From: Salpingoeca rosetta
Taxonomy: Eukaryota > Protista > Choanoflagellata
NCBI GenBank assembly: GCA_033442325.1
Contig: JAWQFM010000027.1
Coordinates: forward strand, 543,334 to 562,892
DNA length: 19,559 nucleotides
Direction of reading: 5' to 3'
Shown: positions 2,032 to 19,495 of the stretch, piece by piece
How the letters are laid out: each line of letters starts with the position of its first letter
Position numbering within the stretch: position 1 is the first letter of the stretch
The notes under the pieces: model-generated
Database searches by the model: none
Told to the model about the DNA's origin: nothing
What the model saw: the letters and a program-made list of their open reading frames with translations, nothing else
Made by a program: the position numbers and the translations under genes

Positions 2032-5000
2032 CTATACATCTACAATGTTGTCAGCGTCGTAGTCATCAGTGTCAGAGCCATCGTCAGCGCCAGTGTCCGT
2101 TGCAGTTGCCGCTTTCGAAGTTGCAGCTTCAACGGCCACATAACCGTGGCTGGAGCCCTGCAAGGAGAGACACAAGAAGCACTGTCAGCACTGGAGGGAA
2201 AACAAGAAGAAGAAGAAGAAGAAGATGATGATGATGATGATGATGATGAACCAAGCACAGACACAGGTGCACACGTGCACAGGAGGCGAAAGATCCAAGG
2301 CACCCTTGAACACACACACACACACGCACACACACACACGCACGACGCGTACCGCGTGGCTGTCCTCGTCTTCGCTATCCGTCTCGCAGCCGTAATGATC
2401 CAAGATGGTTTCCAGGTTCTGGTAAACCTCCAAGTCCTCCAACAACACCACTTCCTCATCGTCATCGTGAGCAGCAAAGTCAACAACACCCTGCAAAGGC
2501 ACCGTCGCTTCCGCTTCCTTGGCGCCATTACCCGAGGTGTCGCCACCATCATCACCATCGCCATTCGTGTTGGCACTGCCATCACCTAGCGCAACCGTGC
2601 CCATCATCTCGCGTGCCAGCTCGAGATCATCCTCCGTCATCGACGCGCCGTCCAGGCTGTCAAGCAGGTGCGAGCGCAGCGCATCAAAGTTCTGGTAGCC
2701 CTCAAGCGTGTCAATGGACGGTGTGCCTGCCTCCTCATCAGCATCGGCGTCTGCACCACACACCACCGACGATGAAGTGTCTCGGCGCTTCTTTCGCTGC
2801 TCCTCTTCCTCCTGCTGCTGCTGCTGCTTCGCTTTTTCGTGCTCTAGCAGCTGCTGCTCAAGCGCACGCTGCTGCTGCTCTGGCGCGAGCGTGGAAAGGG
2901 GGCGTGGCCGTGGTACCGGCCTACGCTGTACGCTTGCTGCCTGCTCTGTGTCAAACGTATCATCCTTCTCCTCCTCCTCCTCCTCCTCCCCTTCGCCGGC
3001 GTCGCCAGCGCGAAGCGGCTCCGGGTCACCGTACAGCTGCTCATCCTGTGGCTGCTGCTGTTGGTGCGTTGTGGGCGCAACGCGCTGATGCTGATCTGGA
3101 TCACCATACAGTGCGTCATCGCCAGGTGCCGCTGCTGGGGTGACGGGTTTGTCGGGGTCGCCGTAAATGGCATCGCCCTGTGCCGGTGCTGTGCCCAATG
3201 TAGCAGGTGTCGGGTCACCGTACAGGTTGTCAGCAGCAGGCGGCGCTGCTGTCCGCGTCGTGCCGGTAAATGCGTCACCGTACACATCGCCCTCCGCCGG
3301 CAGCGGTGCTCGTGCTGCGTCATTGTTGCCTGCAGGCACGGGGTCACCATACATGTCATCGCCAGCTGGCAGCGGCTGCTGCTGTTGCTGTCGGAAGTCT
3401 TGGTCTGGGTCGCCGTACAGCGCAGAGACGGGCCTGGATGGTGGGTTTGTTGCCTGGCAACCAATCAGAAGTATCATGGAGAGCGGTGCGTGTGGCGAGG
3501 CAAGGGTGGCAACAAGAGCATGAAAGCGATAACCACGCATATTTGTTAAGCGTGGCAGAGAAAAGGGGAGAGATGGATGGATGGATGGATGGACAGAGGG
3601 ATGGGATTGACAGATGGACATGGGCCGCACACAGACACACACAAGCAAACAAGCAAACAAGCAAACAAACAAGCAAACAAGCAAACAAGCAAACAAACAA
3701 ACAAACAAACAAACAAACAAAACAAAACAAAACAAAACAAAACAAAACAAAGCAAAGCAAAACAAAACAAAACAAAAAAACAATCACACACCTCGCTGTA
3801 GATGGGAGCCGCCGTAGACCCAGCTGAGAACGACTTTGGCTTGTCGTACTCTGGCTGCGAGTAATCATACTCGTCGTGGCTGGGCGCCGTGGGGTAGGCG
3901 TACTCGTGCTCCACGGCAGGTCGCCCGCCAGGCTGCATGCTGCGCTCGAGTGTGTGTTGGTACGGCTCCCAATAGTCGCCCTCACCACCATTGTTGCTGG
4001 TGGAGGTGGCACCAGCGGTGTTGTTTGGTGCGGTGTCAGTGAGCGACTCGCCGTAGTCCAGGGTGGGGTCCGTGATGCTGGTGGTCAGCACCTGGTATGA
4101 GGTGGTGGTTGCATTGGAGCGCACAGACTCGCGAAGCAGCGACTGCCCAAACACGTTGTCTGCATCCGCACCACCAGCTTCATCGCCAGCATCACCACTG
4201 GTCGATGGCTGCTGTTGCTGGTCCGCTGGCGCTGCTGTCGCTGCAGTTGGTGGCGGCGGTGCTGGTCGTCGTGCCGCCATGCCTGGCTTTGGTTTTGGCT
4301 TTGGCTTTGGTTTCGGCTTGGGCTTGGGCGGTGTTGCCTTGCTCGCTGCGCTTGCAGCGTCATCACCATCCCCATCACCTCCATCAGCGGCACTCTGCTT
4401 GTCTTCTGCTGCGCCCTCAACCGCTGCCTGTGCGCCATCATCTCCCACGCGCACCGGTGCCGCTGCTTCCATTGCTGTTGCTGCTGTTGTTGCTGTTGTT
4501 GCTGGTGTGTCTGCGTGTTCGTCCGCTGGTGGCGGGGGTGCTGGCCGCTTGTCGCGCAGTGAGGCCGGCTTTGTCGCACGTGATATGGGCGGCGGCGGCG
4601 GCGTTGTTGGCGGTGCAAACGCAGGCGACTTGGGCAGCAGCACAGCATACTCCTCTTCAGGGCCAGGCGCCACGGCAGCACCGCTCACAGTACTGGTTGC
4701 CGTACGCGTCGCCGCAGTGGTGGTGGTGGTGGTGGTGATTGCTGGCAGGGTTGGCACGGTTGCGGGCGTTGGCGAGAATGCTGGCAGGGTTGGGACGGTG
4801 GCCGGTGCGGTGTTGGTCATGGGGGCGCCCCGTCGCATGGATGCAGACGCAGACGCAGATGCAGACGACACTGACACGGGTGTTGCTGCTGACGCTGACT
4901 GGCCAGGGTTGCCAGGCAGCGGCATGGCTGCACGCAAGGGCTGTGCTGGCGGCGATTCGGACGGTTGTTCCGGCTGCTTGGAGGCGTCTGCCGCCTGCGC

Positions 5001-7222
5001 TTTGCTCCTCAACTCCTCCAGTGCTTGCTCCAGGGCATCGCACCGCTCCGAGGAGAACCCTTGCGCAAGAAACTGCGACCCACGCAACCCAAGCACCTGC
5101 GGCCCTTCAAAGCCGTTGGTGTAAAACTTGCTGCGAAAGTCGGACAGGCCAGACTGCTTGATCCAGCGCAACACGTCAGCCGAGTCCCAGTCACGCGGGT
5201 TCGCAGGCAGGCCGCTGGTCTGTGGCTCCTTGCGCACAAACGTGGGGCGGCGGTGGCTGGCACGGTCACGACTGAGCGTGGGAATGTAGGATGGATCGTC
5301 CTCCTGCTCCGAAAAGTGCCGGATGGAGGTGCCACGCTGCATGAGCGATGGCGATGACGACGACGGTGGTGCCGTTGCTGCTGATGATGATGCTGTTGCT
5401 GCTGATGATGATGGTGTTGTTGATGATGGCGGGGGCAGTGGTGGAAGCGGCCTGCTCGTTATGGACGCAGCAGAGCCCTGGGCTGAAAGCGCTGGTGATG
5501 CTGCTGGCGTTGAGGCTGTGGTTGTGGTGTGCGGGGCGGACGGAAGTGGTGGTCGTCCTTGCGTGCTTGGCAATGGTGGTGGCGGCGCCACGGTCGTGGT
5601 GCTGTGTGAACCAGACATGTCGTTCTGCTGCTGCCCCGATGGTGACATGTTATCGAATCCGCCATAATACAGCTGCTGTTGCTGCTGCTGGGATGCTGCT
5701 GTTGACGATGATGACGATGATGATGATGTCGGAGCGCCGGTCGCTTCTTGAGCCGTGCCACTCTTCCGTACGCTCATTGTCATTGGCGGCGGCGGCGGCG
5801 GTACTTGGCCAGGGTGGCGGCGGTGTTGGGGTAGCGGCTGGCTTGGCAGCGGCAGCAGCGGCACTGGTGGCAGCTTTGATGGCAGGCGCACGTCACGTGG
5901 CGAGGGCGAGGCACTCCCGTCCACCGCTTGCTGCTGCTGTTGCTGTTGTTGGCTGCGTGTGAGCATGTTTCTGCTTGCAATGGCTGCATCTGGATCACCA
6001 TACAAGTCCTCAGGAAGATCGTCGTAATCACCAGCGGTGCTGCTGCCGTCGTTGCCGCCCTCCACATCATACACCTCCCCATACATGTCCCCGCCACCCT
6101 GCGCAGGCGGAGGTGGTGCATGCATGTGCGGCTGTTGGTGCTGCTGCGATGGCGGGGGCGGTGGCGGTTGTGTGTCAACGGCATCATCAGCAGATGCGTC
6201 GCCATAGATTTCACCCATGGGTGCCACGTCACCGTACGTCTCATCAGAGGCGGGCGGTGGCGGCGAAACTGCTGCTGGTGTCTGTGGTGCCGGTGCTGGG
6301 GCGCGGGAAGGTGCCATGGGGGTTGCGGTTGGTGCTGCAGCCGTTGGGGTTGGCATTGTGGCAGTCACAGTGGCTGTGTTGTCGCTGCCGTGTGCGGTCC
6401 TGTCGCCATCTGCCTTGGCGCTGCCAATAGCAGGAGGGGTCGGGAACACCTTGACCCGCTGCTGTGTGGGTGGCGGTACAGGCGCTTTCTTCTTCTTCGG
6501 CGGCGCCGGTGGTGGCGTCTTCTTCTTCTTCTTCTTCGTCTTCGGGCCGGCACCAGACTCCTGACCCTGTTGTTGCTGTTGCTGTTGCTGCTGCTGTTGT
6601 TGTGGGAGTGCAGCTGTTGGTGGTGGCAGGGGCGGTGCCTGCTGCGGCGGGGCGTCGCCATCAATGTCGCCGTACACATCCTCCTGCACAGCTGCGCCTG
6701 GTGGCGGCGGTGGCGGCGCCTCCTGTGGCGGTCTATCATCAGCGTCACCATAAACCGCATCGCCACCCTGCAACTGCTGCTGCTGCTGCTGATTGTGTGT
6801 TGCTTGTGGTGGTGGTGGTGTAAACTGAGCGCCCGGGTGTGGCGGCAGCACGGCGTTGAGGCCGCCGCCAACGGAGCCAAACTGGCTGCGGGGCCGTGGT
6901 GCTGGCCGTGGTCGTGGTGACGGCTGCACCTCCTGCTGCTCCTGCTGCTGTTGGTGGTCGTGGTGTTGGATGGCCGGGTCTCCATAAATAGCGTCGGGGT
7001 AAGGAGGGGTAGCGGTGGCAGTGGTGGACGCCGTGGTGACGGGCGCATGCGTGTCTGGGTCACCATACACATCATCAGCTTGAAGAGCGGGCGGTGCTGT
7101 TGCTGTTGGGAATGACGATGCTGATGATGCCGACATGGTTGTTGTCGGCGGCGATGGCTGGAGGCCTGTATCGCCGTACACATCTGCGCCCGTTGGGGCA
7201 GTGGGCGACACCTGTGGCGTGT

Positions 7223-7267
<45 letters not shown>

Positions 7268-9780
7268 TGTGTGTGTGTGTTTGGGGGGGGGGGTGACCGT
7301 TGCGTGTCAATGTGTGTGAGACAAAGGGTGGGGGGAAAGGGAGAGTCGACCCGCACAACGCTTACAAGGCAGCAAGCAAGTAATACGGTTCGCACACAAC
7401 AGTGCGCACACACAAATACAATCGCATGCAGACAGCCAAGGAACAAAAGACATTGTGGGTGATAACCTGGTCGCGGTCTGTGTCTGACGTCTCGCCTTCG
7501 CCAATGGCGGGCAGAGAGCTCTTGCTCGTCTCCCGTGACGCCGTCTCGCTCAGGAAATTCTGCAGTGATGTGTGTGCAGTGTTGGGTGGTGATGTGATGA
7601 AGGGCGGTGGAATGATGGTGATACGGTGTAGCAGCAGCACGGCTGTATGGGATAGGGGTGTGACTGACACAACACGCAGTGCCTGTTTCGAACGACGCAC
7701 GCACGCACGCACACGCAAGCGTACACACGCACGCACATGCACACACACACACGCCCATGCAGCCCGCCTGTGAATGTGCGTGTGCGTGCGCGCGTGCGCG
7801 TGTGCGTTGGTGGTTGATTGATTACCTCTGGGAGCTGGAGGGAGTAGCGGGAGCCCTTGGTCTGGGCAGCAGCCTCCATAATCGCCGTCACCCAGTGGTA
7901 CCGGTCCATGTCGTTGGACGCGCACATGAACTTGCACTCGTTCTTGAAGTGCGCCAGGATCTTGACGCATTGAGGTTGTTCGTTGGTGTTGGTTGGCTGG
8001 TGTGTGAGCACGTGATGGCTGCGCACACGTCAACAAGCACACAAGCACACACACACACATACACACACAAGCACAACACACATACGAAACACGGACACAG
8101 ACACAGACGAGCGCACACACAAACACACAAACACACACACTCACAGACAAGCACACACTCTCACCTGCTTGCGCGTGTTGGGCCAGAGCGGTTCGCTGAA
8201 GGGCTTGAGGCAGAAGCAGAGGTTTGTCGACGGCGCGTGTCGCGTGTGGCGCACAAAGTACACGTACATGTTCTTCAGGGGCCACTGCCCAAGGGAGCGG
8301 TCATACTCTTTTGCTGTTTGCGGCGGCTTCTTGTAGTACGTGAGCGTGCACTGGTTTCGCGACAGGATAAAGTGTCGTGACTTCCACGACTTGTGCGAGC
8401 CACCACGCTTCGACAGCGTCCCTGGTGTGTATTGTGTTGTGTTGTGTAGTGTTGTGTTGTGTTGTGTAGTGTTGGGTTGCGTGTGGTGTGCATGGGTGAG
8501 GGTGGACAATAGAGACAGCGAGGGCGTGTGGGTTGTGCATGGTCAGATGTTTGCGGGCGTTTGATTGTCGTGTCGGTGTGCGATTGCATTGCTAGAACAC
8601 AATGCAGCTTCACCTGCAATGGTCTTGAGGGTGTCGTTTTGTGGAATGATGGGAACCTAAGACGAAGCAGCAGAAGAGGATGCACAAGCACATGCGCATG
8701 CAAGAACAAGTACGCAATGCGTGGGTGAGGTTCACGTGAAGTGCAGTGGCACGCTGTGCAAACGCACACTGGTCAGACATATAACGTGCACCCCAAAACA
8801 GAGCGCGCACACACACACACACATACACACACACACACACACGCACGCACGCACGCACACACACACACACGCACACACACACACACATGACAGCACCTGC
8901 GCGAGTTGGAAGCGACAGGACGCTCGAATCTCGTCTGGCCAGCTGGCGCGAACTTCGATCAGGCTCTCACCCCGGCTGATCCACCTGCACCAGTGGACAC
9001 GCGGTGGTGATTGGCGGTGTGGGTGGAATGTTTGGTTGAGCGGCACTGGAACAGACAGTGGTGGTGAAGTAATGTTGCGAACAACACGAAAGCATACAAC
9101 AGTTCCCTCGTGTCGTGCTGCAAAAACCACGCCCAAAACCAAACAAGCAGTACGGCAAGGCAAGCAAGAAAGACGCGTCAGAAGCGAGGAGATTGCTCTG
9201 CATCACGTACCGTTGGATTGGTGGCTGCTCGAACACCTCCATGAGCTGCCATCGCATGTTGGGTTCCAGGGTGAGGCGATGCTGACTCGTGCACAGGCTC
9301 ACCACCAAGTCCACGGTCACAGTCGCGTCAACCTGCAGTGTTGTGTTGTTGTGTTGGTGTTGGTGTTGGGTGTTGTTGGGTGTTGTTGGGTTGTTCGTTG
9401 TTGGTTGTGTGAGCGCACGTGTGGTTGCGAGTACGCGTATGTAAGAGCAAGCGCACGAGTGAGTGCTTGCGAATCTGTGCACAGTAGAATGGAGAGTGGG
9501 CTTGGGGCAGATCACCGAGACAGGACAAGGATGCATGGCCCGAAGACCAAGACAGGACAGACAGAAGCCCACACGTGAGGACCCACCCACACCCACCCAC
9601 ACACACACACACACATACACACACACACACACCTGACCCACACATGACACGAACCTGCATGCGCATTTCCACGACGTCACTGGGCGTCTTCTGGTAGTAG
9701 ACGGTGAGGATGGTGGATGCGGATCCCGTGAAGGTGCGCCCAATGTCCTCCATGTTGCCGCTGGTCATGAGGTCGTCCAT
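2032..9780 (-). CDS. RA-PH (MRL/Grb7-type) + SAM domain, proline- and tyrosine-motif-rich scaffold, ~1836 aa; exons 9780-9655, 9332-9211, 8984-8897, 8656-8614, 8421-8165, 7960-7826 (alternative in-frame acceptor 7996), 7559-7467, 7211-3792, 3453-2353, 2157-2032
   Basis: All 9 introns are GT..AG with matching phases; total 5511 nt. RA-like: ILTVYYQKTPSDVVEMRMQVDATVTVDLVVSLC..RWQLMEVFEQPPIQRWISRGESLIEVRASW (compare RIAM WCLYEIYPELQIERFFEDHENVVEVLSDW). PH: IAGTLSKRGGSHKSWKSRHFIL..TYYKK..NMYVY..APSTNLCFCLKP..KFMCASNDMDRYHWVTAIMEA. No C-terminal BPS/SH2 was seen, so it is closer to the RIAM/lamellipodin architecture than to Grb7. Confidence 0.88.
3572..3780. repeat. Compound intronic microsatellite (GGAT)n, (AAAC/AAGC)n, (AAAAC)n
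   Basis: Read directly; lies within intron 3791-3454 of the RA-PH gene. Confidence 0.93.
5001..5210 (-). other. SAM-domain-coding segment within the RA-PH gene
   Basis: LPANPRDWDSADVLRWIKQSGLSDFRSKFYTNGFEGPQVLGLRGSQFLAQGFSSERCDALEQALEELRSK fits the SAM pattern W-x3-DV-x2-W-I/L-x3-GL-x2-F/Y-x3-F-x2-N-x-I/F-x-G-x2-L-L. Confidence 0.85.
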
Positions 9781-10174
9781 GATTGATGTTGGTTCGAGTG
9801 CTTGAAAATCACACTGCTTGCTTGCAGGGGAGGGGGAGCACGTTCTTTGGCGGCCGCGTGCGTGCGCTTCAAGCCCGAGGGACCGCTCGCTTGATTGCTG
9901 GAGGCGATGGGGTGGGCGGATGCCAATCACCCTTGCTTGCCGCACGTCCACTCTCGCCACAACAAGCCAAGTACAAGCAGGCACAAGCAGCAGCGCAACA
10001 AGCGCACAACCAAAACAACAACAACTTGGACTGCTGGTGCTGCACCAAAGCGCCCAATTAAAGAAAAACTTGTGAAGGATTCAATGCACATTTATGACGA
10101 ACAAGAGAGAAAAAAACAAAAAGGGAAGGAAGCAACGCAAAGAGAGAGAGAGAGAGCGACGGACGCTGCTGACG
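9781..10174. promoter_or_regulatory. Short divergent (probably bidirectional) promoter/5' UTR region
   Basis: Only 394 bp separate the ATG of the - strand RA-PH gene (9780) from the ATG of the + strand SSX2IP-like gene (10175). Inferred from gene geometry only. Confidence 0.55.
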
Positions 10175-10552
10175 ATGATGGAAGAACTGGACCTGTCTGC
10201 GTTGTTGATGAACGACGAGGAGGACGACGGAGGCAACGCAGGCGGCGACCTTGTAGACCAGCTGGGGTTTGGCAAGGGAAACGGACAGCCAGTGCAGCAG
10301 CAGCAGCAGCAGCAGAAGCCGTATGGCGTGCCGTCTTCATCGTTTGCAGAGACGCTGCAAACAACGACGAACAGCGGCAGCACCAGTCGCAGCACTGACG
10401 TCAGTGGCATCGGCCGTGGCCGTGGTGTCAGCGCAAGCAGCGAGGTGGACGACAGGGACCTGGCACACCGCTCCACCCACATTGACCACATTCTCGACAT
10501 TCTCGGCATTTCACCGCTCAACGCAGTGGACCGCTGTCAATCCCCAGGTGAG

Positions 10553-10601
<49 letters not shown>

Positions 10602-11762
10602 CTGAAGGTACCTTCTTCGTATCTGAGTTTGTCTCCTTGTGTGTTCAAAGCACGACTTGTGTCTCTGCACCACCCCCCCCTCCCCCCAACTGGCACTGCT
10701 CATGCTGCATACACACGCATGAACACACACACACACGCAGAGGATGCGCACGCAAGCCTAGAGGTGGTGGAGCGACTGCTGGACCTGCACCGCTACAACA
10801 AGCGCATGTATGAGGACTTGCAGTCCACGTAAGTCCACACCCTAATTGCTTGAGCGCTTCATAGCGTGCGTGCTTTAATAACGTGTACGCATGTTGCGCA
10901 GGCTGCAGTGAATTGGTGTTGCTTATCCAACCCACTTCGGCGGGTGTCCACAGTACTTACCGGTGCTCACATGTGTGTGTGTGTGCGTCATCGCGATTCA
11001 CCAACAGCATGGACCGTCTCAAGGACGACCGGCACCAGCAGGACCTACAGAAGGCAGAACTGAAGGTGGGCAAGATGTGTGTGTGTGTGTGTGAGGAAGT
11101 GGGAAGGACGACAGGGCGCGGGGTGCGTGCTTGTGTGCAGCCGAGTCATTCCCTTGCTCTCTCCCTTTCCTCCCAAAGCCACCACCCACGCATACCCACA
11201 ACTGCACATGCCGTAAACACCACGCCATCCCTTGACAACCCTCTCTCCCCCTCCCATGCCTCCCCCCCGTCACTCAGAACACGATACGGGAGGTTGAGCG
11301 GGCCCGTGATCAGGTGCAAGAGGAGCTGCGCCAGGCCCGCGTCGCCATCTCCCGCCTGCAGTCAGACCTCAAGACCCAGCAGGCAGAGGTAAGGTGTTTT
11401 GTGTCTGTATCTGTGTGTGTGTCTGTGTGTCTGTGTGTGTATCTGTGTGTGTCTGTATCTGTGTGTGTCTGTCTGTGTCTGTGTGTGTCTGTGTCTGTGA
11501 GTCTGTGTGTGGATGACATCTGTCCCCATGACTTTTCTTGCTGCGACCCTTGCTGTACATTTCTTGCCTTTGGCGACCTCACCTTCACCCTCCGCCCGCT
11601 GTGCCTGCGACCAGTCGAAGCGCGTGAAGCAGAATGCGGACACGCTCATCAACCAGCACGTGCACGAGCGCAAGCGGCTGCAGCGCCAGTACGACGCCCT
11701 CAGAGAAGCGCTCAGCAAGGTTGCCAAGCACAAATTGGGGTTTGGGGGGTTCATGTATTTGA

Positions 11763-11845
<83 letters not shown>

Positions 11846-12009
11846 ACAGTGTGCACAGGGGATGACTTCGGGTGCCTTCTCAGCTCACACACACACATGT
11901 GGCACGTGTGCAGAAAATTTCGCAGCAGGAGTCGCGTGGGCTGTCCATCCACTGCCTGAACGAAGAGAACAGGTGCTGTGCATTGGCTGTCGCACCCACA
12001 GGCTGCACG

Positions 12010-12056
<47 letters not shown>

Positions 12057-12663
12057 TATGTGTGTGTGTGTGCTGCTCCTCTTCTCACTGCTCACTGCGG
12101 TATCACGTCACCATCACCACACCAACCCATGCACATGGTCACCATCGCCATTGTCGTCGTCGTCGTTGCTGCCAGGTTGACGCGTGCCGGTGGTTCTCGT
12201 GGCAAGTGGGCCGTTCCAAAGAAGTGAGATGTCATTCACATGTGCATGTGTGCGTGTGTGCTTGTGCTTGTGTACGGCACTTCCTTCCGTGCACTGCCAC
12301 CTGTCTTAACGCCTGTGGCGTTTCGCAATCATGGTGCCCACCCTAGCTACCATCATCCCCGCGTTCCTTACCACCACCACCACCACCATCATCCCCACGT
12401 TCCTTACCACCACCACCACAACCACCACCACCACCATCATCCCCACGTTCCTTACCACCACCACCACCACCACCACCACCACCAGTGCGGCCGGGGCGAT
12501 TGAGTCGGAGATGCAGGAGATGCTCGAGCGACGCGTTCATGCCCTCAAGGACGAGAACGACCACATGCGACAGGCCCTCGCCGTGAGTTGTCCCTGCTGC
12601 CGAAAGATAGTGGTGGTAGGAGGTGCTGCTGCTGCTGCTGATGCTGCTGCTGCTGCTGATGAC

Positions 12664-12717
<54 letters not shown>

Positions 12718-12942
12718 ATCGCTCATATGTCTGTTCTCTCACCTTGCCGTCCATCACCACCACCACCACCACCACCAGTCGCTTGATGTTGACCTCGGGC
12801 AGGTGCTCCGCTCCGCCAATGTGCCCTCGTCCCCGCTCGATGAGTCATCCACATCACTCAACGACTCGTTTGATGGTGAGCACACATGTGCGCGCGCGTA
12901 TGTGTGTGTGTGTGTGTGTCCGCGCGTGTGTGTCTGTGTCTG

Positions 12943-12977
<35 letters not shown>

Positions 12978-13317
12978 GTCTGTCTGTCTATCTGTGTTGT
13001 TGTGTACGCGTGCATAAATGCAACACACGCTGGCCTACCCCTCATTCAACGCTACACCCACTTCACTTCACCACCACCACCACATCTCACCACCACATCT
13101 CACCACCATCATCACCATCACCAGCGCGGCGGCCGCTCGGGTCTGGGCAGTTCCAGCTGCCGTTTGATGTCGCCGGCGAGCGGATTGAGCGCTCGCTGAA
13201 GAAGAAGATGCAGCACTTGCAGCGGCAGCTCGAGGACGTCACCAGGCGCCACACGGAGAACACAGGTGAGGTCGGTGGTGGTGGTGGTGGTGATGATGAT
13301 GATGTTGCTGTTGCTGC

Positions 13318-13352
<35 letters not shown>

Positions 13353-16170
13353 ATGGTGACGTGTTCATGTGGTTTGTTTATCTGTATGTGTGTGCGCGCT
13401 TGTGTCTCTGGCACTTCACTTCCTTCGTGGATGTGTGTGTGCCATTGCGTCATACTCACGACGCGTGCGCTTGGTTTCCATGCCACCACGATATTTCTTG
13501 TGTTGCTTCTCTTGTTTCCGCTCCTGCAGATACGGAGGATGTCGCCAAGCTCAAGGTGAACACACACCCCACACCTACTCGCACACACACACACACATAC
13601 ACACACTCACACAATTACGTGCACACTTTCTCGTTCTTTGAACTCTGTGTGTCACCACGTACCAACCTCTCCCTCCCCTCACCTCTGTCATCATGATCAC
13701 CACCATTCCCTCCTCCACATCAGGCGGAGATTGCTGAGCTCAAGGAGGTGATGCAGCAGCAGCAGCAGCTGTTGCTCGAGGCGGAGGCAGGGCTGGCATC
13801 GTCGTCATTCGCAAAGTGCGGAAACAACAACACCATCACTGCACTGCTGTTGGGTGTGGATTGCCATTCCTCCTCTCACACTCACTCACTCACTCACTCA
13901 CTCACTCACACCCAACCTTGCCTCACTCACTCACTTCCCGTATTCACCCTCTCACTCACCCCACCCACCCACTCACTCACTCACTCACTCACTTCCCGCA
14001 TTCACTCACTCACTCACTCACTCACTCACTCACTCACTCACTCACTTCCCGCATTCACTCACTCACTTACTCCTCCCTCAACCGTCAACATCACCACCAC
14101 CGCCATCGCCACCAAGCAGGGAGCACTCGTTCCTGCAGTCGCCGGGCGCCCGCGCACCGGCAGCAAACGCGTCGTTTGTCGCGCGCAAGGAAACGTCGCT
14201 GCAGAAGGAGCGGTGAGGGATTGGTGGTGATGGCGGTGATGGCGGTGGTGATTGTGCTGGTCGCCGTGGTCGTGGTGCATGGCCTCTTTGAATGTGCACG
14301 CGTGTTTGTTCACAATGCTTCAGTGTCACACACACACGCACGCACACACGCACGCACATACACACTCTCACACATACCACGTACACACTGTCTGTTCTCA
14401 CCCACCCTGCCACCAACAACACCATCCCCCCTTCACGCCTTCAATGTTTCATGTGCAGCGAGCAACTGAACGCGTGGGCGCTGGTGTTGGCGGAGAAAGA
14501 GGCCAACTTGGCTCACGAGTTTGCAGAGCTGAAGAGAGCCGAGCTCAGGCAGAAAGTCAGGTATGTGTGTGTGTGTGTGTGTGCTGACTGGCTGCCTTTC
14601 TCACCAACTCCTCTCTCCATTCCTTCCTCCGCCCCTTCCACCCTTCCACCCCACCCTTCATCTCACCTGTTGCCCTCCTCCCACCCATCTCGTTCTTCAC
14701 AGGACGCCTGGGGCCTTGAGCTGGCTGGACACGCCAACAAAGCCGTCCTCATCATCGCTCTCCACAACATCGTCTGTCTCCAACACATTCGCGCAGCCAC
14801 CGCAATCATCATCAGCAGCAGCACCAACCGGAACAGGTGGTACTAGTGTTGGTGAGCGCGGTCGTGGCTCGTCCGCCCTCCACCACTCCGTGTCTGCACC
14901 GCTGACCAGCACGCCACCGTCGACATCAACACCTGCTAGCACCTCCGCGGCCAACGCAGGCACGGGCGAGCCGGGCCAGGCGTTGTCGACATCTTCGCCA
15001 CTGCGCGAAATGAAACGCGCAAGCGATTTCCTGCGCCAGGACGGTGCGCACACAGGACATGACACCAGCGGCAGCAACAACAGTGACAGCAACAACGACA
15101 TTTACCGCAAGCACACCAGCAGAACCAACACCCACACCAGCAATGGCAATGATGACAATGATGATGGTGGTGAGGGTGAGGGTGATGCAGACCTTGATGC
15201 TGCGTTCCCATTGTCATCCTTCTCCCCAATCCGTCGCGGGTCTGCCGGCAACAGCAGTCGAGGCGGTAACGACGGCACCAACAGCAGCACCAGTCTGGCC
15301 ACATCTGTTCGCAGCAACTACGAAGCGGCCACACCCATTATGAACAGGCTGGCTGATCTTGATGCCATGAGCAACCCAGACGGTGACGGCCGTGGTGGTG
15401 GTGGTGGTGGTGGTGGTCATGATGTGTCCAACGCTTCCACCACCCGCAGCACCAACCTCTCCCCGATTGTCAGCATGACCGGCAGCAATGGCGGTGGCGG
15501 TGGCGATGGTGATCGTGATCGTGATGTTGCGAGCATGGTGTTGGATGAGAGAGACGAATATGCGCAGCACCTCAAACACATGCACGACTATGAGTACCGC
15601 CGATTCCGCGACCAACCCACCCTCGCTCAGCCACGTGATGACAACAACAATGATGATGGTGATGACGGTGATGGTGATGATAATGGTGGCCGTGCTGGCG
15701 GTCGTGGTGGTCGCCAGCAGCAGCAACAAGTTCACGGTTGGTCAGCGAGTGCACACGCAACACCGCAGCAGCAACGGGCGCACACAGCAAGCACACACGG
15801 CCGTGGTGGCGCCGACACCAACACCTCCAACACAAACGCCAAGAGCGCGACCATGGCGGCGGCAATGTCAACACCACCACCCGCATCGTCATCATTGTCA
15901 GCATCAGCGCTGGTCAGTCCCCGGTTCAGTGACTTCAACACGGTCATGTCTGAGATTTCAACACCGCGACCAGCATTGCGGTCCTCTGCCTTCCTCCCGA
16001 GTTACGTCACACCTGCACGCGCCAGCAGTGGTGGTGGCGGTGATGGTGGTGGCAGCAGGCGGCGCCATGATGATCGTGGTGGTGGCAGGCTGGATGTTTC
16101 TTCATCGCCGATGCGAAGCGACACGAGCTGGCACCAGCTGTCACAAGGTGACGACTTTTGTGTGTGTTCT

Positions 16171-16201
<31 letters not shown>

Positions 16202-16716
16202 GTGCGTGTGTGCGTGCGTGCGTGTGTGTGCGAGTGGATGTGTGTGCGTGTGCGTGTGTGTGTGTGCGTGCGCGGCAGTATTACCTTCCCTGCTCGCCTT
16301 TCCTGCTGACCTTGCCCATGCTGCTTGACCTGTGATGCTTCCCTCTCACCCGCGTGTACGCCCCACTTCAGACTCGCACACATCGCCCCAATACGCGCGA
16401 CAGCGGCAAGACCACCAGCAACAAGACAGGGGTGAGGGGGGATCGGAAGAGGCGGAAGACATGCCACCGAGTTGGTTGGCTGGCGGTGTTGGTCTGGAGC
16501 GGCTGGAGCAGCTCAAATCGCGACTGCACGCCGTTGGCATTGTCTCGCCAAGCAAACGCAACACAGGCACACACGCGCAACAACAGCAGCAGCGAGGAGG
16601 GGCGGAAGGAACATCCAGGGCAGTGGATGCAACAAAAACGGGAGAGGAAGCAGCAGATGCTGCAGGCACCATTCATTTCGCAGGTCTGTATGTGTGTGTT
16701 CGTGTTTGTGTGTGTA

Positions 16717-16755
<39 letters not shown>

Positions 16756-16969
16756 TGGGGGGGGGGGTGTGTGTGGGGGTGGGTGTGTGTGTGGGTGTGT
16801 GGGTGTGATGGCTGTCACTGATGTTCTTTCCTGTGATTGTCCTCCCTGTTTTCGACCATTCACACCTGCCCGCGTGCTCACGTGTTCACGTGTGTGTTTG
16901 GGTTCAGGCCACGACTTTGTGCCGCTGTCCCAACCAGATCTCTCCATCAGCTTTGACGGCCGCATCTGA
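10175..16969 (+). CDS. SSX2IP: SSX2IP/ADIP (Msd1) homologue, afadin- and alpha-actinin-binding coiled-coil family, ~1102 aa; exons 10175-10547, 10741-10828, 11008-11065, 11278-11388, 11615-11719, 11914-11972, 12176-12223, 12486-12582, 12779-12875, 13125-13265, 13530-13555, 13724-13815, 14120-14212, 14459-14560, 14703-16147, 16372-16683, 16908-16969
   Basis: 16 GT..AG introns, all phase-consistent; 3309 nt. The spliced protein shows collinear SSX2IP-like blocks: LLDLHRYN, QHVHERKRLQRQYDALREAL, IHCLN..RAGGSRGKW, ERRVHALKDENDHMRQAL, FQLPFDVAGERIERSLKKK, KLKAEIAELKEVMQQQQQLL. Compare recalled human QYNHDMKRKEREYNKLKERL, ILNYVGRADGKRGSW, CKEMIKTQQQLL. Confidence 0.85.
11766..11843. repeat. (TG)n microsatellite, intronic
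   Basis: Perfect TG run in an SSX2IP-like intron. Confidence 0.95.
12349..12484 (+). repeat. Three-copy higher-order repeat ACCATCATCCCC(G/A)CGTTCCTT+(ACC)n at an intron 3' end
   Basis: Three near-identical units separated by variable ACC runs, ending at the acceptor before 12486. Confidence 0.88.
12624..12717. repeat. (GCT)n then (GAT)n trinucleotide tract, intronic
   Basis: Read directly; source of spurious poly-D/poly-M/poly-H ORFs. Confidence 0.93.
13879..14068. repeat. (CTCA)n tetranucleotide array with three embedded TTCCCG(T/C)ATT interruptions
   Basis: Read directly in intron 13816-14119. Confidence 0.9.
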
Positions 16970-16978
16970 GCACTTGCT

Positions 16979-16982
<4 letters not shown>

Positions 16983-17049
<67 letters not shown>

Positions 17050-17140
17050 CACTGCGGGTGTTTAGCCATCTCCATGCACTGTTTTGTTGTTGACATGTGT
17101 TCTTTCGTGATCACACGCCGCGTTGATGATGGTGATGATG

Positions 17141-17172
<32 letters not shown>

Positions 17173-17177
17173 GATGA
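16983..17177. repeat. (TG)n and (GAT)n tracts in the 3' UTR region of the SSX2IP-like gene
   Basis: TG run 16983-17046 and GAT run ~17124-17178. Confidence 0.9.
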
Positions 17178-17431
17178 TGGCTTGTTGTCTGACGTTTCTT
17201 GTCGTCCTGCATGTGCTTGTGCATAAACCCGCATTCCTGCCATCACTGCGCCCAGACACATGCAAGCTGTGCTGTGACTGCGAATTCGTGGTGGGTATCA
17301 TGTACTTGAAAAGGACAATGGGAAGTTGGTGGGTGTTGTGGCTGTTGGTATCACGATGGGTGATGAAACTGGACACTTGAATGGCAGGTGTCTGTGATTT
17401 GACATAATTGTGTGTGTGTGCGTGTGTGTGT

Positions 17432-17462
<31 letters not shown>

Positions 17463-17661
17463 GTTTTGCGACAGACCTAGCGCATGAAGAGAGGTTGGGA
17501 ACACGAAGGGAAAGGGGGTACGAGAACGAAGGAAAGGTGGTGACAGTGTGCGGAATGGTTGCATATGCCAAAGCATTCGCGCGTGCGAAAGGAGGGGAAA
17601 GTGAACAAGCAATCCACACGCACAGAGCGCGCACACAAACACAGCCACACATTGGCACCAT

Positions 17662-19495
<1,834 letters not shown>

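Follow-up and report, generated by a model that had tools for sequence, protein, structure and literature searches.

Gene structure

The DNA analysed here (the window) is a stretch of 19,559 nucleotides (nt) of the choanoflagellate Salpingoeca rosetta, i.e., positions 543,334 to 562,892 of contig JAWQFM010000027.1, in a genome of 55.4 Mb and 68 contigs; window coordinates are used throughout. From 9780 to 2032 it carries a gene of 10 exons for a candidate docking protein of tyrosine-kinase signalling. The gene and all its features given below are on the minus strand. The exons were delimited by three-frame reading and inspection of the junctions: all introns are of the GT..AG type and the phases are consistent. 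The coding sequence of 5511 nt corresponds to 1836 codons, i.e., 1836 amino acids (aa), in agreement with the open reading frame (ORF) of about 1836 aa announced by the original prediction, which had been made before any database search.

RNA data were considered over positions 4001-10000 and came from two raw stranded runs (X21 and X22) and from Logan contigs of runs X4 and X7, which belong to other studies. The start codon is the ATG at 9780: an in-frame stop is found upstream with no earlier ATG in between, and the 5' untranslated region (5'UTR) extends past 10000. The coding part of exon 1 (9780-9655, aa 1-42) contains the N-terminus and the first RA strands and is closed by a GT donor; record 9 of the X7 contig is colinear with it over 9652-10000. 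Exon 2 (9332-9211, aa 43-83) encodes helix 1 of RA and a W-x-L-x-E core. It has joints at 9329/9652 and 8982/9209, and it matches positions 4-62 of the RA-PH profile described below, both in the genome scan and in the spliced protein. Exon 3 (8984-8897, aa 83-112) is the end of RA and is supported by the joint 8982/9209, by 88 nt of contig depth in bin 8801-9000 and by a profile alignment which is gapless across the junction. Exon 4 (8656-8614, aa 113-127) is a micro-exon of 43 nt encoding the short RA-PH linker; it is supported by the lengths of the contig pieces and by depth, and falls on the linker in the alignment to the family profile. Gene predictors could easily overlook an exon of this size.

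Exon 5 (8421-8165, aa 127-212) encodes PH strands 1-7 with their basic K..K.R signature, matches the Pfam PH family and is present in the X4 and X7 contigs. Exon 6 (7960-7826, aa 213-257) encodes the C-terminal helix of PH, as supported by record 3 of the X4 contig, by the joint 7559/7826 and by profile positions 180-216. Exon 7 (7559-7467, aa 258-288) is an acidic and Ser-rich linker, for which 95 nt separate exons 6 and 8 in both contigs; an ambiguity of 2 nt in the GT-AG borders was settled as 7467/7211. Exon 8 (7211-3792, aa 289-1428) is an uninterrupted ORF of 1140 codons, with RNA over 4001-7200, and contains SAM and most of the disordered body. Exon 9 (3453-2353, aa 1429-1795) contains the second YGD array, an acidic region and a conserved C-terminal block, and is defined by its open frame, AG acceptor, GT donor and phase 0. 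Exon 10 (2157-2032, aa 1796-1836, stop codon at 2034-2032) is predicted from an in-frame AG acceptor preceded by a pyrimidine tract.

Long microsatellites of the (ACAA)n/(GTTT)n and (CA/TG)n types are present in most introns (3637-3783, 7219-7280, 8038-8158, 8808-8887 and 9584-9632). The TG-rich stretch in the intron between exons 5 and 6 has about 70 other genomic matches at 72-97% identity.

Expression of the gene

Exons 1 to 8 belong to one spliced and expressed transcript. A Logan contig of 1523 nt from X7 runs from the 5'UTR and exon 1 to exon 2, then through 130 nt to exon 5 and through 230 nt to the start of exon 8. Another, of 1282 nt from X4, contains exon 5, exon 6 and a piece of 95 nt joined to exon 8 down to position 6612. 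In the raw reads of X22, the joint 7559/7826 is present in 11 reads and the joint 8982/9209 in 7 reads. The micro-exon was deduced from the 130 nt found between exons 2 and 5, since exon 3, with 88 nt up to its GT, does not fill this length. Binned contig depth places about 42 nt of exon inside 8601-8800, and a scan for segments of 41-45 nt flanked by AG and GT returned 8656-8614 as single candidate. RNA depth is strongly strand-specific, and stranded depth is continuous over exon 8 at 4001-7200. The RA-PH exons and the exon 7211-3792, which had been predicted to form a single transcript, are thus joined by spliced contigs from two studies and by raw reads, and are not split between transcripts.

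Apparent mixed RNA bases were observed at 5943, 6805, 6941 and 6959 (e.g., at 5943, where about half of the reads have C>T), in or beside CAG/polyglutamine (polyQ) repeats with many loose ends. They most likely reflect cross-mapping from other polyQ genes, not alleles or editing.

The N-terminal RA-PH tandem

Residues 1 to ~250 form an RA-PH tandem such as is found in the MRL (MIG-10/RIAM/lamellipodin) and Grb7/10/14 proteins. Exon 5 alone matches Pfam PH (PF00169, E 1.1e-7). On the contrary, no RA domain was matched exon by exon with Pfam, nor in a six-frame genome scan with PF00788; RA is missed in single-exon scans because the exons are too short, i.e., this reflects exon fragmentation and not absence. 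A profile (hidden Markov model, named A1) was built from 16 aligned RA-PH regions of proteins matched by the PH exon (see below), the protein of the window not being among them. The spliced protein scores 218 bits against A1, as one domain (aa 38-247) which is ungapped at all the five splice junctions crossed. Such a score, with no gap at the junctions, confirms the exon model as well as the RA-PH reading. The members of A1 have Pfam RA above the cut-off.

When A1 is compared with all PDB sequences, RIAM comes first (7.5e-12), then Grb14 (1.1e-10), Grb10 (1.6e-9), lamellipodin and the RA domain of Grb7, and both halves of the profile contribute. A structure was predicted with AlphaFold2 (AF2) and A1 for the first 250 residues of the orthologue from Choanoeca perplexa, not for the protein of the window itself (predicted local distance difference test score, pLDDT, 89.4; predicted template modelling score, pTM, 0.85). 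A Foldseek search with this orthologue model returned solely RA-PH tandem structures (RIAM, lamellipodin, Grb14 and Grb10) in the top 15, with ~255 aligned columns and a template modelling (TM) score of ~0.64. Grb proteins occupy ranks 9 and 12, and only single PH domains are found from rank 16 onward. In an Atlas feature search the nearest neighbours were Grb10, RAPH1 and Grb14. The predicted RA-PH tandem is thus found in the spliced protein and in structural comparisons alike. Its designation as a "RIAM/lamellipodin head" is correct at the level of the tandem but not as MRL specifically: Grb10 and Grb14 match about equally, and neither a coiled coil nor FPPPP is present.

At most ~20-25 residues precede the first RA strand, and the orthologue begins at the same place. 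The linker between RA and PH (~15 residues) is much shorter than in animal proteins (~45 in MRL proteins). The basic residues of PH strands 1 and 2 are invariant across A1 and are aligned with the lipid-binding residues K14, R23 and R25 of Akt1. In a profile scan of the whole genome, both RA-PH halves were matched at two loci only, i.e., this gene and PTSG_04346. It must be noticed that a search of the genome for small GTPases returned, as sole full-length match in a single exon, a Rab.

The disordered body and its tyrosine motifs

The body lying outside RA-PH and SAM (~1,500 residues) abounds in Pro, Ala, Ser, Thr, Gln and Asp. Its net charge is about -98, and it includes two Lys/Pro patches as well as several runs of polyQ and of polyproline (four runs of at least 5 Pro). 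It contains 39 Tyr, 19 of which are followed by Gly and 15 of which belong to a YGD motif, whereas shuffled sequences have 0.24 YGD on average and none of 5000 shuffles reaches 15. In the same manner, [VILM]YG[DE] is observed 15 times vs. 0.04 expected. Around the Tyr, the preferred residues are acidic at -3/-2, Val, Leu, Ile or Met at -1, and Gly, Asp and Pro at +1, +2 and +3, respectively.

The motifs form two arrays: (i) the first (7178-5994, aa 300-694) has 8 copies, with two YGE-type sites nearby; (ii) the second (3417-3025, aa 1441-1571) has 7 copies with a spacing of 19-25 residues. A recent tandem duplication as origin of the arrays was ruled out by mixed codons, DNA flanks of 39% identity and no matching Tandem Repeats Finder period; the YGD motif is therefore kept by selection and not by recent copying.

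Other docking sites accompany the arrays. YxxP occurs 14 times, one copy being inside PH, i.e., 13 outside it (shuffle mean 5.5; 11 of 5000 shuffles reach the count). SH3-type PxxP sites amount to 7 of class I and 3 of class II, including RPLPPLP, and YQN is present in 2 copies. The motif counts of the original prediction (15 YGD in two arrays, 13 YxxP, several SH3 ligands and two YQN) are thus recovered, the figure for YxxP being that obtained outside PH.

RPLPPLP (5453-5433, aa 875-881) is the textbook Src-SH3 ligand of class I; RPLPx[LV]P is present in all orthologues, 75-92 residues ahead of SAM. Several sites have counterparts in the orthologues: EEEYAVLLP (4658-4632, aa 1140-1148), in one copy here, corresponds to 2-4 copies of EEY..LP; a tyrosine cluster (3974-3798, aa 1368-1426) includes a conserved HEYAYP; the first YQN (2697-2689, aa 1681-1683) has YENL at the matching place. 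The second YQN and an HYG belong to a C-terminal block (2451-2389, aa 1763-1783) for which ED[LM]..Y.N.[ED].[IV]..HYG is found in all five orthologues. The basic patches are a polybasic Lys/Pro patch (6539-6471, aa 513-535), with class I/II PxxP sites, and a (Lys-Pro)7 run (4325-4284, aa 1251-1264) flanked by RPAPPPP sites at 4527-4547 and 4248-4268.

The central SAM domain

A SAM domain is located at 5201-4995 (aa 959-1027), as seen by AF2, Foldseek and PDB sequence matches. Its scores against Pfam SAM_1, SAM_2 and SAM_PNT (16.5, 14.3 and 12.4 bits, respectively) are under the cut-offs (24, 20.5 and 23), but all its weak matches are to SAM. With phmmer, the PDB match is the SAM of neurabin. 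The AF2 model, obtained without alignment, is a five-helix bundle with a core pLDDT of 83-92; its best 50 Foldseek matches in PDB are all SAM/PNT, with a root-mean-square deviation of 1.5-2 A and a target TM score up to 0.83. A profile of the five orthologous SAM blocks, which share 42-50% identity, matches only SAM chains in PDB (ETV6/TEL and neurabin). On these predicted models and profiles, the domain is a divergent member of the SAM fold; the central SAM of the original prediction is thus recovered by fold, by Foldseek and by the orthologue profile, below the Pfam cut-off. A prediction of the SAM homodimer gave a score of 0.00, which is not evidence either way on self-association.

A conserved pre-SAM motif (5288-5232, aa 930-948) ends in the basic RRPTFVR; no part of the protein is better conserved between genera than the SAM block taken together with this motif (45-52% identity). 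RRPTFVR itself (5232-5252, aa 942-948) appears as RRPT[FIY]VR in all orthologues. It fits a basophilic (PKA/AGC-type) Ser/Thr kinase site and could act as a switch beside SAM.

Orthologues and related proteins

Orthologues of the long form are C. perplexa EP00045_P011110, C. flexa EP00730_P005231, Monosiga brevicollis MONBRDRAFT_39221 and a JGI metagenome protein; the C. flexa and JGI proteins are without the N-terminal part. When the PH exon was searched against 1.84 billion representatives, no 100% identical match was obtained and the best one was a "complete" ORF of 1179 aa from C. perplexa, with 57% identity over exon 5 and a PH equally far from the N-terminus. In the same manner, queries from exon 8 (the SAM region and the first 95 residues) matched no protein of this locus in the protein libraries. 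The C. perplexa protein is colinear with that of the window (39% identity in RA-PH, E 2.6e-64; 52% identity in the SAM block), and the order of blocks is kept in the orthogroup: RA-PH, Y-G motifs, RPLPxxP, pre-SAM motif, SAM, EEY..LP, HEYAYP and the C-terminal Y.N..HYG.

The acidic-hydrophobic-Y-G motif is enriched in all five orthologues, none of 2000 shuffles reaching the count in any species. The position following Y-G is variable (D, E, V, T or A), while the upstream context of kinase type is kept. YxN reaches up to seven copies in Monosiga, and YDVP/YEVP is present in several species. The classes of tyrosine motifs are thus conserved across genera, whereas their surroundings drift.

In public sets, the orthologues are named only "hypothetical" or "SAM domain-containing", and Pfam gives no match at E 0.01 or better on the Monosiga orthologue. 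No description of an RA-PH-SAM architecture with tyrosine arrays was found in the literature searched, most subscription journals being outside the search. These results suggest that the gene encodes an undescribed RA-PH adaptor/tyrosine docking protein, choanoflagellate-specific as far as the libraries show. The lineage-specific and novel hub proposed by the original prediction thus stands as regards an architecture undescribed in that literature, but it is not a one-off, since colinear orthologues exist in Choanoeca and Monosiga.

The nearest RA-PH relatives are short SAM-RA-PH proteins, i.e., S. rosetta PTSG_04346, M. brevicollis MONBRDRAFT_29641 and homologues in Salpingoeca infusionum and Barroeca monosierra. 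According to Pfam, they have an N-terminal SAM_1, RA above the cut-off and PH. They are 26-42% identical to the C. perplexa orthologue in A1 and have the same short linker, the same invariant residues and a SAM. They differ by a canonical (56-63 bits with Pfam) and N-terminal SAM, by their length (390-600 aa) and by having no tail with tyrosine arrays; only the generic SAM signature is common to the SAM of both forms. The existence of this short family means that the pairing of SAM with RA-PH is a lineage trait and is therefore not unique to the long protein.

PTSG_04346 (390 aa, SAM-RA-PH) was located in the same genome, on contig C11 at 219614-222465, with 91-98% identity over most exon pieces and 75% and 88% for two short pieces. 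Another arrangement was met in a metagenome scaffold of ENA (ERZ23499131, 3001-5388): an intronless protein of 795 aa in the order SAM-SH2-RA-PH. It combines RA-PH with SH2 as in Grb7/10/14 but in another order, and hints at more diversity in the RA-PH family.

Comparison with known adaptor families

The protein of the window is not a member of the MRL, Grb7 or Cas family. With MRL proteins (RIAM/APBB1IP, lamellipodin/RAPH1, MIG-10 and Pico) it shares the RA-PH tandem as one structural unit, for which they give the best PDB profile and fold matches, and a long disordered proline-rich tail with SH3 ligands; among them, lamellipodin is known to be phosphorylated by Abl and Src kinases. On the contrary, it is without coiled coil or talin-binding segment before RA, its linker is a third as long (~15 vs. 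~45), and it carries SAM and repeated tyrosine arrays. A search of the protein for FPPPP/LPPPP EVH1 ligands found none, the only matches being to a loose [FLWY]PxxP.

The RA-PH tandem of Grb7/10/14 is matched about as well as that of MRL. No Pfam match to BPS or SH2 was obtained in exons 8 and 9 (1140 and 362 aa), and exon 10 (41 aa) is too short for one. Grb proteins carry an SH2, whereas the choanoflagellate protein, as proposed below, would be read by SH2 domains.

The likeness to p130Cas/BCAR1 is one of design and not of homology. It concerns an array of ~15 Tyr, many of them in YxxP, inside a disordered substrate region, together with a class I Src-SH3 ligand, and YDVP/YEVP in the orthologues; in p130Cas, this layout allows processive phosphorylation by Src. 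However, the dominant motif is YGD(P) here and YDxP/YQxP in Cas, and membrane targeting is here assigned to RA-PH. No SH3 was matched in any exon, and there is no sign of a C-terminal helical (FAT-like) bundle, the C-terminus being acidic and of low complexity with one short conserved block. Finally, Gab/Dos, IRS and Dok proteins have in common with the window's protein an N-terminal lipid-binding module, a long disordered tail, the YxxP and YxN docking classes and proline-rich SH3 sites; they differ from it in that here RA is fused to PH, a SAM is internal, PTB is absent and the tail has no detectable sequence kinship with theirs.

Proposed mechanism

It is reasonably probable that the product of the gene is a docking (scaffold) protein specific to choanoflagellates, working as a substrate of Src/Abl-type kinases and as a platform for SH2 domains. 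It is a good candidate for a main docking protein of tyrosine kinases in the organisms most closely related to animals. GTPase binding, SAM oligomerisation, tyrosine phosphorylation and condensate formation are properties that we infer from the sequence.

The RA-PH head would bring the protein to membranes on which a GTPase of the Ras/Rap type is present together with phosphoinositides; such coincidence detection has been shown for RIAM (PMC3471229). The conserved RPLPxxP would dock the SH3 of a Src-type (or Abl-type) tyrosine kinase, and the docked kinase would then phosphorylate the acidic-hydrophobic-Y-G-D(-P) arrays processively, as in p130Cas. The c-Src (optimal) peptide AEEEIYGEFEAKKKG is a substrate of choanoflagellate tyrosine kinases, and SEEVYGAVVDKKK, a Monosiga RTKB2 peptide, is a substrate of HMTK1; MbSrc1 and MbSrc4 prefer it to the c-Src peptide (PMC3082566). 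The upstream context of YGD resembles AEEEIYGEFEAKKKG and SEEVYGAVVDKKK and, together with the conserved SH3 ligand, therefore suggests SH3-docked processive phosphorylation. The resulting pYxxP and pYxN sites would bring in SH2 adaptors of the Crk/Nck/Abl type and of the Grb2 type, respectively, while SAM may let the protein associate with itself or pair with a second SAM protein. In its function, the protein would thus be similar to p130Cas, Gab/Dos or lamellipodin, without membership in those families.

Several points weigh against the docking protein so described. The basic residue of RA strand 2 (R39 in S. rosetta) is not kept in C. perplexa, and Ras/Rap binding is therefore uncertain. 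None of the motif peptides was matched in two supplementary files of one S. rosetta phosphoproteomics paper. The motif D-[VILMF]-Y-G-D-P has 3 occurrences in the whole genome (55 Mb), all in this gene; it is therefore no kinase or SH2 consensus of general use in the organism, and its role could be to bind a dedicated partner without phosphorylation. The joints between exons 8 and 9 and between exons 9 and 10 are based on GT-AG signals, frame and continuity of the YGD motif, the reads covering 4001-10000 only. Lastly, the depth of X22 is ~17x on the 5' exons and UTR vs. ~40-55x on exon 8, i.e., the RA-PH exons reach ~40% of exon 8. This lower depth may be due to 3' bias or to cross-mapping of CAG repeats (in X21, depth rises steadily toward the 3' end), and a shorter isoform without the RA-PH head, so that part of the transcripts would lack it, is possible. 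The C. flexa transcript P0069 starts just upstream of the SAM block.

Alternative explanations

One reading, which we consider unlikely, is that of a choanoflagellate counterpart of lamellipodin/MIG-10, i.e., an actin adaptor acting by proline-rich, SH3 and profilin-type contacts and by its polybasic patches, phosphotyrosine being at most a modulator. The RA-PH fits the structures of lamellipodin and RIAM no less well than those of Grb10/14; the four polyproline runs, the ten PxxP sites and the Lys/Pro patches of the long disordered tail would suit such a role, and with two RA-PH loci only in the genome, no separate MRL-like gene was seen in the profile scan. However, an EVH1 ligand of FPPPP/LPPPP type and a coiled coil ahead of RA are both missing, the linker is much shorter than in MRL, and the most conserved features of the tail are the tyrosine motifs and SAM, not the proline runs.

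It is also doubtful, and rather more so, that the YGD arrays are a short linear motif working without phosphorylation, either for a non-SH2 partner (e.g., an adaptor ear-type domain reading aromatic-Gly-acidic) or as condensation stickers. DPF/NPF-type arrays are a feature of endocytic scaffolds, and the 15 evenly spread copies look like them; the exact motif occurs in no other gene of the genome, and the disordered part has 37 Tyr vs. 16 Phe, as in sticker-and-spacer sequences. Against this, the hydrophobic residue at -1 and the acidic ones at -2/-3 are a hallmark of tyrosine-kinase substrates and match the peptides phosphorylated by choanoflagellate kinases, the orthologues vary after Y-G but keep this upstream context, and the arrays go together with a conserved SH3 ligand and YxN sites.

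That the model is an artefact, merging a small RA-PH gene with an adjacent low-complexity SAM gene, is very improbable: the lower RNA depth on the RA-PH exons, the start of C. flexa P0069 and the lack of any protein of this locus in the libraries would agree with it, but the passage from exon 7 to exon 8 is crossed by two spliced contigs of independent origin and by split reads in the raw data, and both the "complete" C. perplexa ORF and the M. brevicollis model have RA-PH followed by SAM on one protein.

Neighbouring sequence

On the minus strand, an open frame at 18698-19504 matches the legume-like lectin family (PF03388, E 1.2e-6) and, judging from this match, is probably an exon of a cargo receptor gene of the ERGIC-53/VIP36 type. 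Among the other long ORFs, at 10094-17918, none has a credible match in Pfam.

Significance

Choanoflagellates have tyrosine kinases and SH2 domains in numbers that match those of animals, but to our knowledge almost nothing is known of the substrates of these kinases. The gene described here is expressed and conserved across genera, thus providing a testable candidate for a substrate hub, in an organism in which transfection and genome editing work. Moreover, the RA-PH tandem, usually discussed for the animal MRL and Grb7 adaptors, is present outside animals with SAM partners, which bears on the assembly of these adaptor families. A wider scheme may be put forward, tentatively and as something we would not yet expect to hold as a whole: the RA-PH tandem would predate animals and would exist in choanoflagellates in two forms, both coupled to SAM, the long form being the main processive Src/Abl substrate and SH2 platform, i.e., a counterpart of Cas/Gab linking GTPase and lipid signals to tyrosine kinases. 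If this is true, the protein would be the first concrete and genetically tractable substrate hub for the study of tyrosine signalling in a unicellular relative of animals.

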